From: Haliotis rufescens
Taxonomy: Eukaryota
NCBI RefSeq assembly: GCF_023055435.1
Contig: NW_025964334.1
Span: forward strand, 25,978,001-26,042,000
DNA: 64,000 bases
Direction: 5' to 3'
Shown: piece after piece, positions 44,101 through 56,100 of the stretch
How positions within the stretch are numbered: the stretch's first letter is position 1
Layout: every line of letters starts with the position of its first letter
Program-made: the position numbers and the translations under genes
The notes under the pieces: generated by a model
Told to the model about the DNA's origin: nothing
Databases searched by the model: none
Seen by the model: only the letters and a program-made list of their open reading frames with translations

Positions 44101-47100
44101 TGGACCATACAATTCAGTGATTGACATCATGAGCATCGCTCCACTCAATTGGGCTACAGCATGAAATGATACAGCAATAGTGGTGTAACAATAGGGAGAT
44201 ACAGTATTGTATCCCAATACGAGGCCTACTATAGACCGCCTCCATGGTCTAGTGGTCGAGAGCCACCCGGAGAGCGGAAGGTTCTGGGTTCGATCCCCGG
44301 CCGCGTCATACCAAAAGACAGTCAGGGATTGAGGTCAGTAAACATGTACATGTAGTAATTTATTATAGGAAGTGTATCATCTTGTATCGATAGAGAAAAA
44401 AGGGTATCATGTTTTGTATCGTATGAAAACTCACGATGTATTGTTTCACCCCAAGTAAACTAAAATAATTGTCAAATCCAACAGTACATTGCACTTCACC
44501 ATTTCACTACTTTACAGGACCCTTAGCAGAGCGCCAGATAACTTTTTGAGCAATTGAGTTTTTATTTGAAGGTTTCTATTTTAATTGGGATATTACATTT
44601 ATCACTGGGTAACCAATATTTGGTTCACTCCTCTATTTATAACTCTATTGGGTTTTTCATAATGAGTAAATATTTTGAGATTTAAACAAAAAAATGAAAT
44701 AATGTTTTAGATGTAATATAATGGTTCTAAATGTACAGTCCTACGTACAACCCCCTTAGCAGTGCTCGATCTGAGCACATCTAAGATCTCTGTTGCTGTC
44801 AACACCAATTTTCTGGTGGACAATTAATTAACACACTGGGGGGTTGGGGTGAGGTGCGGGAGAAATTCTCCAGCATCTGGATGGTTTAGGATTTCTTGCT
44901 AACTTGAATAAAGATAAACAATCTAATTTTAGCTACAGTTAATATTCCATGGTTCTCCCACTTCGATTTGTTTTACTCTCCTCAACAAGCTGTGTACACA
45001 CGTGGACATAGAAATATCTTGTGAGAGAATACATTTTATCAGTGAAGTTAATATATTCATCACACAAAGTGCTACATTTATGAGCCTGGATACATCATGA
45101 AGTTGGGTGAGTAATGTTTTAAGTTATTCCTAGTGACTTCTGTAAATATATATTTATTTAGAGATGTATGTGTATTGAGAAATGATAACATACACACCAG
45201 TTACCATTTACTTTCGAGAAAAACAGTTGAAACGTAAATCCAAACAGAATTATCTAACCTAATTATAATTAATTGTATATTTGATAAACTAATTCCTTGA
45301 TAATGTATACACTCTTTGAAACCATATTGAAACTTAATTTGGGTATGAAAAAACAGCATAATACCAGCAAGCAAACTTTTTCTTTTAGGCTTGCTTAACA
45401 AGGATGTTTGGGCTGAGCACAATACCGGTTTTAGTTGATAAGGAGAACAAATGGATCAACATTGAGGACTTCTGTAAATTTTTGAGGACTGAACACCATG
45501 AAGAAGACAGAATAAAGATAAAAAAAGAAAATATCCGAAGAGAAGTTGCTTCCTATCGCAATAATTATATCAAGACAGACGGAAATGCAATTTTTCTCAA
45601 TACAGTTGCAATTGTAAAATACATATGTCACCACAGTGATGACTTTAGAATATGCTCAAAGATAACACAGAGCATTCACAGCAGTATATTTGGAGGCCAA
45701 CAGAAAACAAACTCAAGAACATTATTTGACTTATATAAACAGATTGCAACATCACAATTTACACATGATATCAATGACCTTATTGATTACACTGCCATTG
45801 AATCAGATGTTCCGAACTTGGAAATATTATACAAGAAGCATTTCACAGAGAAGGAGTGGTCTAACATTTGTTTGTTTGAGTTGCACTTTGCAAATGACAT
45901 TGTAGCGACTGAGCGTGATAATACCACTGACAAAAAATGGGAATATTTTGGAACAGTTGCCAGTGCAAAACATCTTAGCAGTGCTATACTGAAAACTGCA
46001 AAATCCACAATCACAAGACGACTAGACAGATATAGTTCGCACATTGAAGCAGAAGGCATTGAGATATACGCAACATTTCGTCATCGCCCTCATATTGTAG
46101 AAAATCAAATATTAAATGATCTAACTAACATTTTCCCTGGAGAAATACTATCAGTCACCTGCGTGAGTTGCCATTGTGTTTCAACCAAAAATCATCAAGA
46201 TCTTGTGGAGGTGTTTGTGGAATGTAACCCAGCAATTGAGGAAAGAAATGCTGAACTTCTACAAAGGATCATTACCAGTAGACTGAATCAAGAGCACTGC
46301 TTACAATGTCATCTTATTGTGTTGTTTCCACTTGGATCACTTGAACCATATTACCAAAAGAATGGCCAAATTGCAAGGTTAAGTCTTCATGATGACTTTC
46401 GCATGAAGAAACTTCAAAGTGAAAACTTTCTGCAGCTCAATGCTCTTTCACAAAATGAAGTTACAGAGATTTCCCTCGATTCCCGTGAAAAATGTCGATC
46501 TTGTTTCACAGCAAATCTACCGAAACCACTCTCTGTCTCTAACTTTGAAATCCTTAAGGAATGGACTTTGGATGTACCACTGGTTGTGCAAATCGTCTTG
46601 GATACATTCATCAACAAAGATACCATTCAGCAATCTAATAACACCCAAAAGACCATGAAGAAGAAATTGGAACGACTCTATACAGCTTATGACCTGCTAT
46701 TGAATACTTACAACAAGAATTTTATCGGAGTTCTGCAGCAGGCAACAACTGATGAGCTTCTAATGAACTACCATAGCATAAGCAATGTCTTCTCAATAAC
46801 AAGTGCTTCTGGAATAACAACATCTTTGTCTCTTGCTGAAAGAAATTTAACAAGCAAATCCATTGATGACACCTTGTACTTTGCAACCTATATCAAGGAA
46901 CATCCTCTCACATATAATACCTTAGCAGGTGAAGTGAAGGGCATGGTGAGCATGAGAGGATGCCACATAGTGCTGATGCTTGACAATCTTGTCCGCCTGA
47001 AGTATCACAGTGACCCAAGCCCAGGAGAACATCGTTCGAAACAGCTCTGCATGTTGCCAATAACACTGCAAGGCATGCCAAAGGATTCAGTTGAAACAGA

Positions 47101-53100: not shown

Positions 53101-56100
53101 ACATTATACTCATTAATTAATCAACCATGTAATAATAAATACATTCAACTTTTCATTCAACTTGCTGAAAACACAGGCTACACAGAATAGTAAAGAATTC
53201 TTCAAATGACACATCTGGAAGCAAGGTCGTAGCGCTAATGAGAAAAGTCAAGGAATGGGGTCAAGAAAGGTCGTATGTTAAGGCCTGTTGGCTGAATTTA
53301 TTTTGACACTTTACAACAAATACAAGTGATAGCTTATCGGGGCAAAATGCTGAGGAGACTTGGTTATACGTAGGACTGTGTAGGCTTGACTCCGAAAGTA
53401 AATTAGCTCGTAATTGTATATCGGAAATTTCCTCGTCAAGGTAAAACCCTGCTGATTATTCAATCAATTGTTGCATTTTGTTTCCTGATGAGTAAAATAG
53501 CGCCAGCCAGAATATGTTTCAGTATTGTTTATTGTGAAAAAATGTGTAGATATAAATTGCAATGGATCTGTGAATTGTGACACAACTAGGATAAAAAAAG
53601 CATGTAAGGCTTAAAAAATAAAAGAATTGGTTCTCAGGCAATGACTTTTGAAAACAGAGTGCAGGCGTTTTTTTTGGTTTTTTTTAGCTTGTTCAAACTA
53701 GTATGTTCCCAAATAAACAGTTGTGCAACATCAACCTGGGAAAGGTCATCCCTAAACAACATACAAGCATACAAACTCCTATTGCTGCCATGACCATACC
53801 ATGAGATGTGCAGTAAAGCAGTGTGCATGTAAAAGGAAATAACTGTGTGACGTATTGGATCGCGTTGTATAAGAATCTTAAATATCTAAAAAAAATTGAA
53901 ATAAAAACGAAACGTGCAGCAGACTTTATGATGATGTGGGCGGTGCCTGAGAACCAAGACTTTTATTTTTTTAGCTTAAATAAGAAGAAACGTGAGGTAT
54001 GGGTCAAAGCAGTGTTTTTTAGGATGGTAGAATTTCATAGCAAATGTTAGTTAGCTTCAAGTGGACATGTTTCTGTTACAGGTTTTCCGCTGTTGACGAC
54101 AAAGCGTGTGTTCTGGCGTGGTATTGCTGAGGAACTGCTGTGGTTTATCCGAGGGTGTACCAACGGCAAGGATCTCGAGGACAAGAATGTCAACATCTGG
54201 AAAGCCAATGGTTCCCGAAGTTTTCTGGACAATCTTGGACTAACACATCGAGAAGAAGGTATTCCGGCCAATCAGGGCATTCTAAAGGATAGACACAGCT
54301 GCCTCACTCTGGCTGATTATTATGATGAATGTGTGACATCCAGACACTTTTAGGGTGTGCCAGATAGTGGGTTAAAATCTTGATTATGTTTCTATAGTCC
54401 TCGCCACTTGAAATAGAATCATGAAAGATCGCGATGATAAATTAACGAAGATGGCTGCATGTATGCTTATACTTATAAAGTGAAAACAAGCCATTCCACC
54501 GATAAAGAATATTAATCTCAGTAATGACAAATTGCAATTTATCGCTAAGAAAATGGACATTTCTTGAAAAATGCATTTTGCAATGTTTGCCATTGTTGTA
54601 AGTAATATTCCTTTTAAGCGGAATGGCTTGTTTGCACTTTATCTTTAGGATTGTGTTAAAAGCACACAAGTTTCTTTATTCACTTTTAATATGCAATGGC
54701 CCCCTAACATTTCTCAAGGCTCCTCAAATCTTTATATGGCATCTAAAATATTACTGCTAGGAGACAGTGGCTACCTGTAGCTTGGAGGACTGTTTAGGGT
54801 TTGGAAGAAGAAATAGGCTGTCATTACATGTTTCACTAGTCTGACAACGAGTTTCTGCATCTTCCTGAGAAAAGGGAGTTAACTGACTGTAAAAGTCCAG
54901 TTTCCACCCTTGCCAAACTAGGCTGGAAATAAGGAGTTAAAAACTGGCTGTATTAACGACTCTATGCATAGTCCAGTCAGAATCACGTAACAAAATCAAC
55001 ATCAGGTTTGTCAACTGCCATGCAGATTTATTTCGTTTGCACGATTTGCAAAGCATTTGTACCGACAACTTAGTGTCAACAGATATTTTCCAAATCTGTT
55101 CATGTTTTTATTCAAGGTGCTTGTGATTTGATGCTATTCGCGAAGACCCACTACATTTAAATATAGATCTTGATTATCGATGAGATCGTCTTCAGTGGGC
55201 ACCACCATTTTATTTGAAGCAAATGCAAGTGATATGAGAGGTGGAATCATATTGGTCAATAGGAGGGACATAAGGGACATAACTTGTGAAGGTCTGGGCT
55301 AGAATAGGTCTTCAGCAACCCATGCTTGCCGTAAAAGGCGACTATGCTTGTCGTAAGAGGCAACTAACGGGATCGGGTGGTCAGGCTCGCTGACTTGGTT
55401 GAAGCATGTCATCACATCCCAAATGCGATGATGTCAATCACTGGATTGTCTGGCCGACTCGATTATTTACAGAATGCCGTCATATAGCTGGAAAATTGCT
55501 GAATCCGGTGTATAACAAAAAAACGAAACAAAACAAAACAGAACTCGTAATGGCCACTGGTGGCGCTACGATCAAGCCCAGATATTCCAGCCTTGTTTGG
55601 CAAGGGTGGAAACTGGTCTTTTATAGTCAGTTGACTCCTTGCTTCAGGGAGATGCATCAAGCCCTGTATGTATTTGTTCGGAATACAATATATTATGTGT
55701 AGTGTGAAGACACTGTGACTCAGCTACATGTGACTGTCTTGCAGGAGACCTGGGTCCGGTGTATGGGTTCCAGTGGCGGCACTTCGGTGCAGAGTACAAG
55801 GACATGCACTCCGACTACACAGGACAGGGCGTGGACCAGCTGGCCGACGTCATCGACAAGATCAAGAATCGTCCATTTGATCGCCGGATAATCATGTGTG
55901 CTTGGAACCCGACAGGTGCGTTGACTCTTCTTCATTATCCCCCGCCGCGCGAAAGCGCGAAGCGGGGGATATAGTATTCACGACCGTCCGTCCGTCCGTC
56001 CGTCCGTACGTCCGTCCGTCCGTACGTCCCACCTGTTTGTTGCCGCGATATCTCAAGAACTAAACACTGGATTGTCTTCATATTTGGAACTATGGTGTAT

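Follow-up and report, generated by a model that had tools for sequence, protein, structure and literature searches.

The window analysed here is a stretch of 64,000 nucleotides from the abalone Haliotis rufescens (assembly GCF_023055435.1, contig NW_025964334.1, positions 25,978,001 to 26,042,000 of the forward strand). It contains, at 44736-53378, a DNA transposon bounded by terminal inverted repeats (TIRs), which has been mobile recently and belongs to a young, low-copy family. The element is a new, recently active member of an already known type of transposon. Its gene, as it stands in the family, has three exons and two in-phase introns and encodes one protein of ~1770 residues, in which a predicted DDE transposase is joined to a nuclease. 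We consider it likely that this is a young, low-copy family in Haliotis of autonomous, cut-and-paste type and with AcademX architecture, the likeness to AcademX being drawn from published descriptions. An earlier reading of the same DNA, made from its letters alone (the sequence-only reading), had proposed a complete, divergent Academ-like element, and its claims are taken up below beside the evidence that bears on them.

The sequence-only reading had reported TIRs of 17 bp and a perfect TGTA target-site duplication (TSD), and both are present. The left junction reads ...TCTAAA TGTA and then CAGTCCTACGTACAACC (44732-44752), and the right junction reads ...GGTTATACGTAGGACTG and then TGTA GGCTTG... 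(53362-53382). The two 17-nt repeats are reverse complements that agree at 16 of 17 positions, with one mismatch, and they enclose an element of ~8.6 kb. The non-coding parts and ends are as follows.

44732-44735, unstranded: left copy of the TSD, TGTA; in paralogues of the host repeat, one T(A/G)TA stands at the same point.
44736-44752, + strand: left TIR, CAGTCCTACGTACAACC, unchanged in four other copies and altered at one position in a fifth; sibling homology starts exactly at 44736.
44753-45403, + strand: 5' non-coding region with no long open reading frame (ORF), 98-100% conserved in the siblings; presumably promoter and 5' untranslated region.
51318-53361, + strand: 3' non-coding region of 2 kb, with no ORF of 70 or more residues wholly inside it and with pieces that derive from other genomic repeats (52085-52213 and 52979-53020).
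53362-53378, - strand: right TIR, reverse complement CAGTCCTACGTATAACC, identical in all other right ends.
53379-53382, unstranded: right copy of the TSD, TGTA, placed from the sequence and from the comparison of copies.

An imperfect inverted repeat of 17-18 nt is unremarkable by itself, as 48 inverted pairs were listed in 10 kb. What makes the ends decisive is that homology to four other copies stops exactly there. With 400 bp from each end of the element as queries, a search of its own 1.33-Gb assembly found the ends at 95-100% identity on four other contigs, with homology bounded exactly by the TIRs. Other TIR-bounded copies, for which the sequence-only reading had proposed to look, therefore exist: four full-length siblings were found, three of them with perfect TSDs of their own, and solo element ends lie at three further loci of the same genome. 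The full-length copies are listed here.

C556, window 44736-53378: window copy, TSD TGTA.
C605:16331976-16340700: copy C605a, TSD AGTA.
C112:39385701-39394430: copy C112, TSD TAAA.
C605:2278166-2286700: copy C605b, TSD AGTT.
C46:6409676-6418634: copy C46, no matching TSD (AATC left, AGAT right).

Identity among the window copy, C605a and C112 is 99.3-99.7%; C605b shares ~98.2-98.6% with these three, and C46 shares ~97.7-98.0% with every other copy. Perfect 4-bp TSDs thus accompany four independent copies (TGTA, AGTA, TAAA and AGTT). In addition, the repeat into which the window copy inserted is found uninterrupted elsewhere in the genome, with the left and right flanks contiguous and one T(A/G)TA between them, for example at locus L030 (...GGTTCTGAATATAGGCTTGACTCGG...). 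The four different perfect TSDs and these paralogous empty sites together establish a target duplication of 4 bp, and it has no sequence specificity.

Copy C46 is the oldest and most decayed of the full-length copies, at ~97.8% identity, and an insertion of 589 bp lies close to its right end. It could have arisen by recombination between two copies, or its flanks may have mutated.

These observations also bear on a quite different explanation, in which a domesticated host gene or gene family accounts for the ORFs, and the terminal repeat and TGTA arose by chance. NCBI annotates the Haliotis cracherodii counterpart as an ordinary “uncharacterized protein” gene, introns are present, and imperfect inverted repeats of 17 nt are common by chance. 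Against this stand five copies, 97.7-99.7% identical, at unrelated loci and with homology bounded by the TIRs; three more perfect TSDs that differ from one another; host-repeat paralogues that are uninterrupted at the corresponding site; and the decay of several copies by frameshifts. We therefore attach practically no probability to a host gene at this position, and treat the locus as a TIR-bounded transposon.

The sequence-only reading had also placed the element in an intron of a host gene, which the flanking exons bear out. Pfam matches to PF00303 identify exons of TYMS, which encodes thymidylate synthase, on both sides of the insertion.

43809-43937, + strand: TYMS exon upstream of the insertion, matching PF00303 positions 1-43.
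54078-54227, + strand: TYMS exon downstream of the insertion, matching PF00303 positions 40-84.

Since both exons lie on the + strand, the element sits in TYMS intron 1 in sense orientation. A search of the assembly with PF00303 found a single TYMS locus, and the insertion lengthens the intron from ~1.5 kb to 10.1 kb. Intron 1 of a single-copy gene has thus gained 8.6 kb together with the element's own sense-strand splice sites. The insertion target was itself a copy of a very abundant short repeat (flanks 44500-44735 and 53383-53430): at least 924 candidate matches were counted for the right flank alone, and contigs cover the left flank to a depth in the thousands. In contigs from other individuals, loose ends at 44731-44732 resemble the right flank. 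An allelic empty site at this position was considered and rejected, because a flank repeat with at least 924 candidate copies makes such loose ends count as paralogous. The check for an empty site suggested by the sequence-only reading is consequently answered by paralogous sites within the host repeat, and not by an allele of the TYMS intron itself.

Three long ORFs lie on the + strand of the element, at 45404-47344, 48179-49168 and 48930-51317, as the sequence-only reading had noted. It had joined them through in-phase GT-AG introns. This proved correct for two introns upstream, which are real, but the junction of the second and third ORFs is a deletion of 41 bp. The resulting gene structure is given below.

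45404-47285, + strand: exon 1 (ORF1), encoding an N-terminal helical region, a fold like the C-terminal subdomain of ANL enzymes, a further helical region, and strands beta1-beta3 with the first catalytic Asp.
47286-47471, + strand: intron 1, 186 nt, GTAAGC...TTTCAG, phase 1, from the sequence and a probable RNA contig.
47472-47641, + strand: exon 2, 170 nt, start of the acidic linker; in a tblastn search, residues 1-41 of the H. cracherodii protein P0001 fall on 47519-47641.
47642-48103, + strand: intron 2, GTGCGT...TTTAG, phase 0, with the P0001 junction ...SPLQ|IAPCD... at 47641/48104.
48104-48934, + strand: first part of exon 3, encoding the rest of the acidic linker, alpha1, beta4 (second Asp), beta5 (His) and the start of an all-alpha insertion domain.
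48934-48937, + strand: site of the 41-bp deletion, where all four siblings have 41 extra bp.
48936-49829, + strand: second part of exon 3, in a shifted frame, encoding the rest of the insertion domain, the Glu helix, a basic linker and the Cys cluster CLSSEMNxCQ...PDCSKPK.
49830-51317, + strand: nuclease domain and basic tail, with the stop codon at 51315-51317.

The donor of intron 1 at 47286 precedes the end of ORF1 at 47344, so that the ORF's own stop is not reached in the mRNA. One contig of the same species, from the probable RNA run X17, skips exactly the 186 nt of intron 1 with GT..AG borders. Intron 2 is defined by the H. cracherodii RefSeq protein P0001, which is 98% identical to ORF3 and in which ...ESPLQ, ending at 47641, runs directly into IAPCD..., starting at 48104.

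Both assembly gaps of this region (47705-47855 and 47915-48044) fall within intron 2. As this is a phase-0 GT-AG intron, they have no bearing on the reading frame. Probes taken on either side of the gaps (47250-47640 and 48100-48500) keep the same order and orientation in each of the four siblings, at spacings of 498, 506, 259 and 261 bp as against 460 bp in the window. Within the intron, a (TG)n/(TGAG)n microsatellite (47650-47704, continuing past the gaps) differs in length by ~250 bp between siblings. The variable spacing fits the (TG)n tract bordering the gap, and length variation of this microsatellite probably caused the gaps. In an intact sibling the three exons sum to 1882 + 170 + 3255 = 5307 nt, or 1769 codons in frame, in agreement with uninterrupted homologues of 1791-1901 residues.

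The window copy itself departs from this structure, and the description of the element as “complete” cannot be upheld. At the junction of ORF2 and ORF3, all protein homologues have 13-14 residues (TFALHxDMMxHCxE) between ...QMNA and VVAISV..., and the window has one base there. The apparent overlap of the two ORFs is accordingly due to a frameshifting deletion and not to an intron. In the assembled sequence the deletion is unique to the window copy, which is not coding-complete because the frame is shifted and the conserved motif removed; an in-frame stop at 49166-49168 lies ahead of the catalytic Glu and the entire nuclease.

Two circumstances could suggest that the window copy is still coding-competent, with the 41-bp difference an assembly error or a segment spliced around: the nearby gaps imply imperfect local quality, and a GT...AG pair is present around the junction. 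However, the sole such pair is ~16 nt apart, too short for an intron, and its removal would delete the conserved VVAISV. Furthermore, all homologues conserve the motif that the missing segment would encode, and the deletion is separated by 890 bp from the closest gap, in a stretch that is otherwise clean. We thus regard a coding-competent window copy as very unlikely and a private deletion as the explanation.

Among the siblings, C605a and C112 have an open exon 1 (651 codons from stop to stop) and an open exon 3 (1084 codons), and C605b and C46 have many frameshifts. The window copy inserted into TYMS intron 1 and later lost 41 bp from exon 3. As it keeps both TIRs, it could be mobilised in trans, and it would move only if open-frame siblings supplied the enzyme.

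The sequence-only reading had proposed structure prediction to look for an RNase H-like fold and a nuclease fold, and models of both were obtained. The transposase region was modelled with AlphaFold (m19048ce4536a) on a natural homologue, P0119 (1090 residues), from its N-terminal region through the Glu helix and with 89 relatives; the model has a pLDDT of 84, with residues 636-745 disordered. In an exhaustive VIA search, the Drosophila P-element transposase (6p5a) scored Z 11.5 (362 of 442 residues aligned, model span 392-1067), followed by Hermes (Z 7.6, 299 residues aligned) and the catalytic core of SIV integrase (Z 6.8, spanning model residues 510-1072). The model is consistent with an RNase H-like DDE core that is interrupted by an acidic disordered loop and an all-alpha insertion domain and that most resembles the P-element and hAT cores. 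Four near-invariant residues were placed on this fold.

Codon 46982-46984: Asp of motif DNLVRL, at the end of beta1, conserved in 63 of 65.
Codon 48524-48526: Asp of motif GPDNK, after beta4, conserved in 48 of 48.
Codon 48608-48610: His of motif PLLHLRK, after beta5, conserved in 48 of 48.
Codon 49179-49181: Glu of motif KREMDH, in the helix after the all-alpha insertion domain, conserved in 53 of 54.

From fold and conservation, we infer that the two Asp and the Glu, at canonical RNase H-like positions and numbered D518, D802 and E1035 in P0119, form the catalytic triad.

The best structural neighbour of the core, the P-element transposase/THAP9 structure 6p5a, shares with it an upstream helical region, a large insertion domain within the RNase H-like fold and a conserved His after the second Asp, at ~8% sequence identity. 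P elements nevertheless have 8-bp TSDs, a GTP-binding insertion domain, a THAP domain and no fused nuclease, in contrast to the 4-bp TSD and fused nuclease seen here, and the present family showed no THAP or GTP-binding signature. The hAT transposase Hermes (8edg, 4d1q) likewise shares the RNase H-like core and an all-alpha insertion between beta5 and the Glu helix. However, hAT elements have 8-bp TSDs and BED and dimerisation domains, and they work through hairpins, with a CxxH motif and a conserved Trp; neither a BED nor a hAT dimerisation domain was detected here, and 39 family members gave no match to Pfam Dimer_Tnp_hAT.

P, hAT, Kolobok and piggyBac were excluded as families on these and related grounds. 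The P superfamily (7-8-bp TSD, THAP and GTP-binding domains) does not agree with the 4-bp TSD or with the lack of a THAP or other Pfam match, and its likeness is one of fold only. The hAT superfamily (8-bp TSD, Dimer_Tnp_hAT) fails on the same TSD length and on the lack of that Pfam match in the 39 members. Kolobok and piggyBac also have a 4-bp TSD, but theirs is TTAA-specific, and none of TGTA, AGTA, TAAA and AGTT is TTAA.

The C-terminal domain (window 49830-51314) was modelled with AlphaFold2 (m4a70c7e6259c) using 55 homologues, which achieved a pLDDT of 90 and a pTM of 0.88. Foldseek matched the model to XRN1 (E 1.8e-8), XRN2/Rat1 (~1e-6), Rad2 (2e-4), and FEN1, EXO1, XPG and GEN1 (~1e-3). 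VIA-align ranked EXO1 first (Z 14.8, 258 residues aligned, root-mean-square deviation (rmsd) 4.1), followed by FEN1 (13.9), XPG (13.1), Rad2 (12.8), XRN2 (12.4) and GEN1 (11.5), with matches covering model residues 1-433. By this model the C-terminal 430 residues of the element protein share the fold of FEN1, EXO1, XPG (Rad2), GEN1 and XRN1/XRN2, with Z of 12-15 and Foldseek E values as low as 1.8e-8.

The motifs EFAG (49929), CEEKY (50055-50060), DSE (50292), GEAEM (50436, 50442), SGDID (50526, 50532) and GGND (50745) carry acidic residues that are invariant or nearly so among the aligned relatives. Their order along the chain (E, EE, D, ExE, DxD, D) is that of FEN1-type nucleases and matches the metal site of the FEN family. 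The first two acidic positions are Glu here, where FEN1 has Asp. The modelled domain is thus a 5' nuclease of FEN1/EXO1/XPG/XRN type whose acidic site appears to be kept. It differs from the FEN1/XRN group in a beta-hairpin insertion carrying CxCxxxCxC and in its fusion to a transposase. At the sequence level it has neither a Pfam XPG_N/XPG_I match nor a PDB match, so that its kinship to XPG is one of fold only.

Conservation also bears on the proposal of a distinct lineage. The sequence-only reading had based that proposal on motifs that it took to be altered, namely GEAE, DIDA, GND and, in the transposase, PLLH. These spellings are invariant or nearly so in more than 50 aligned relatives from a wide range of molluscs; they are the norm of a family of several hundred members and do not set the element apart. 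The reading had further noted that a C-terminal Cys cluster was absent. Conserved clusters do occur, at places other than the expected one: WHxxxCDGSxxCxC follows beta3, CLSSEMNxCQ...PDCSKPK precedes the nuclease, and CxCxxxCxC lies within the nuclease.

The N-terminus had been described as carrying unexpected domains, and the P0119 model agrees. Model residues 215-340 (window 46046-46441, ORF1 ~215-346) resemble the C-terminal subdomain of adenylate-forming enzymes, with matches to FAAL, FadD32 and acyl-CoA synthetases; the best has Z 13.4 and rmsd 2.0 Å over 117 aligned residues at 20% identity, and 159 PDB chains reach Z of at least 8 against this segment. The ANL-like module is conserved across the transposase family. 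Since the large adenylation subdomain is absent, we read the module as probably structural or nucleic-acid-binding. The N-terminal region probably serves DNA binding. In the literature consulted, no mention of an ANL/FAAL-like fold was found for Academ.

Sequence searches place this protein in a large family. In Pfam, the three ORFs and the 39 family members gave no family-level match, only scattered chance matches, and the PDB sequence search returned nothing from single sequences or a profile. A word-based protein search, with ORF1 and with the N-terminal 190 residues of P0049, found near-self matches only. ESM Atlas returned unnamed eukaryotic clusters only; a faint lead to DUF6589 from the same source (score 0.82) was dropped, as hmmscan gave no such match.

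In an exhaustive search, by comparison, ORF1 has 394 relatives at E<=1e-3 over its whole length, so that the N-terminal region is a conserved part of the family; six listed relatives are full-length single-ORF proteins of 1791-1901 residues. ORF3 has more than 100 relatives at ~45% identity, mostly unnamed or “uncharacterized protein”, in Mercenaria, Mytilus, Mya, Littorina and Haliotis. Most homologues of the element protein are in bivalves.

In the same genome, relatives at 35-50% protein identity occupy about ten more loci, some with frames open for 1345-1523 codons, so that several transposase-nuclease lineages coexist in abalone. Three of them can be given by position, with ~7 more.

C312:1160798-1162249: divergent relative.
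C512:2389764-2391050: divergent relative.
C46:25193193-25194629: divergent relative.

Two other organism labels contain 58-81% of the sampled words of the probe stretch; this sharing, along with the 98%-identical H. cracherodii protein, indicates that the family is common to congeners. In contig sets from other studies, the C605a flank was found in run X5 and the C605b flank in run X10.

AcademX is a lineage of the Academ superfamily (Kapitonov and Jurka 2010 and Kojima 2020, as cited in PMC10045372). According to PMC10045372, AcademX elements carry a nuclease and make 3-4-bp TSDs, and Kojima, as cited there, ties the difference in TSD between AcademX (3-4 bp) and AcademH (9-10 bp) to nuclease and helicase, respectively. 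Pfam has no match for the RNase H domain of Academ (PMC5751038), and PMC10294476 counts Academ elements among the longest DNA transposons and gives them as abundant in bivalves. The family described here shares with AcademX a single very large protein combining a DDE transposase with an XPG/FEN-type nuclease, a short TSD (four independent ones of 4 bp), great length (8.6 kb), a Pfam-orphan RNase H-like domain, abundance in molluscs and TIR-bounded ends. On the two enzymes in one protein and the 4-bp TSD, the models, the conservation and the copies all side with the sequence-only reading. There are also differences: the ANL/FAAL C-terminal-subdomain-like fold lies in the element's N-terminal region, Foldseek puts its nuclease as close to XRN1/XRN2 as to XPG, and the family extends to gastropods (Haliotis, Littorina), in contrast to the near-restriction to bivalves in the survey.

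Several points weigh against the assignment as a whole. The AcademX placement is based on architecture and TSD length, and among molluscs Academ is nearly restricted to bivalves (PMC10294476), whereas this family is also in gastropods. The transposase model is of the homologue P0119, ~31% identical to ORF1, and not of the window protein, and the triad assignment is based on fold-level matches and conservation. Intron 1 has RNA support from a single low-depth contig, and the RNA nature of run X17 is guessed. Finally, one older copy, C46, has no matching TSD.

Some of the same evidence would fit a separate, unnamed superfamily or deep lineage, in which a P/hAT-like DDE transposase independently gained a FEN/XRN-type nuclease and the ANL-C module and resembles AcademX by convergence. 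No sequence link to a named family exists among Pfam matches, PDB sequence matches or source-given names; the P-element transposase is the core's best structural neighbour; Foldseek ranks XRN over XPG for the nuclease; and the sequence-only reading gives other motif spellings for Academ. However, the fusion of transposase and nuclease with 3-4-bp TSDs is the very definition of AcademX (PMC10045372), Academ is likewise a Pfam orphan (PMC5751038) and abundant in molluscs (PMC10294476), and convergence on the same rare fusion and TSD length is less economical. An independent origin therefore seems unlikely to us, and we retain the AcademX-type placement.

A further proposal, which we regard as possible but doubtful, is that of a deep lineage within or beside Academ, in which a P/hAT-type core recruited a FEN/XRN-like nuclease and took on the ANL-C-fold module as a DNA-binding or regulatory part. 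If this were so, the two apparently open copies and the spliced RNA would make this a currently active abalone element, and a tractable system in which to study the part played by a flap nuclease in cut-and-paste transposition.

For an element of AcademX type, the transposase would bind the 17-bp TIRs and excise the element, and integration would proceed by attacks staggered by 4 bp, the repair of which would leave the 4-bp TSD. The fused flap-type nuclease would most likely cut the second (non-transferred) strand, or trim 5' flaps at donor or target. The data show the ends, TSDs, copies, exon structure, folds, conserved acidic residues and deletion, whereas the catalytic roles and the step at which the nuclease acts are inferred.

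To our knowledge, Academ is among the least characterised superfamilies of eukaryotic DNA transposons, and we know of no member with a solved structure or a transposition assay. The present family offers exact ends, four clean TSDs, an externally supported exon-intron structure and confident models. It occurs in a mollusc genus that is farmed, some of its copies are more than 99% identical, and two of these have open frames.

The results also bear on annotation, as NCBI “uncharacterized protein” models in five mollusc genera are transposase genes. Copies of this transposase include the models P0001, P0032, P0042, P0060 and others, from Haliotis, Mercenaria, Littorina, Mytilus and Mya; most of these models are N-terminally truncated relative to the full length of 1800-1900 residues. 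P0102, a model from Mytilus, carries a fused UBE2D domain.

Two repeat pieces were seen in the 3' non-coding region. A 129-nt stretch at 52085-52213 is 81% complementary to 44025-44153, upstream of the element (an inverted match), and a 42-nt piece at 52979-53020 matches more than 30 other loci at 88-93%. Since the siblings show no large length difference there, these pieces predate the recent spread of the family.

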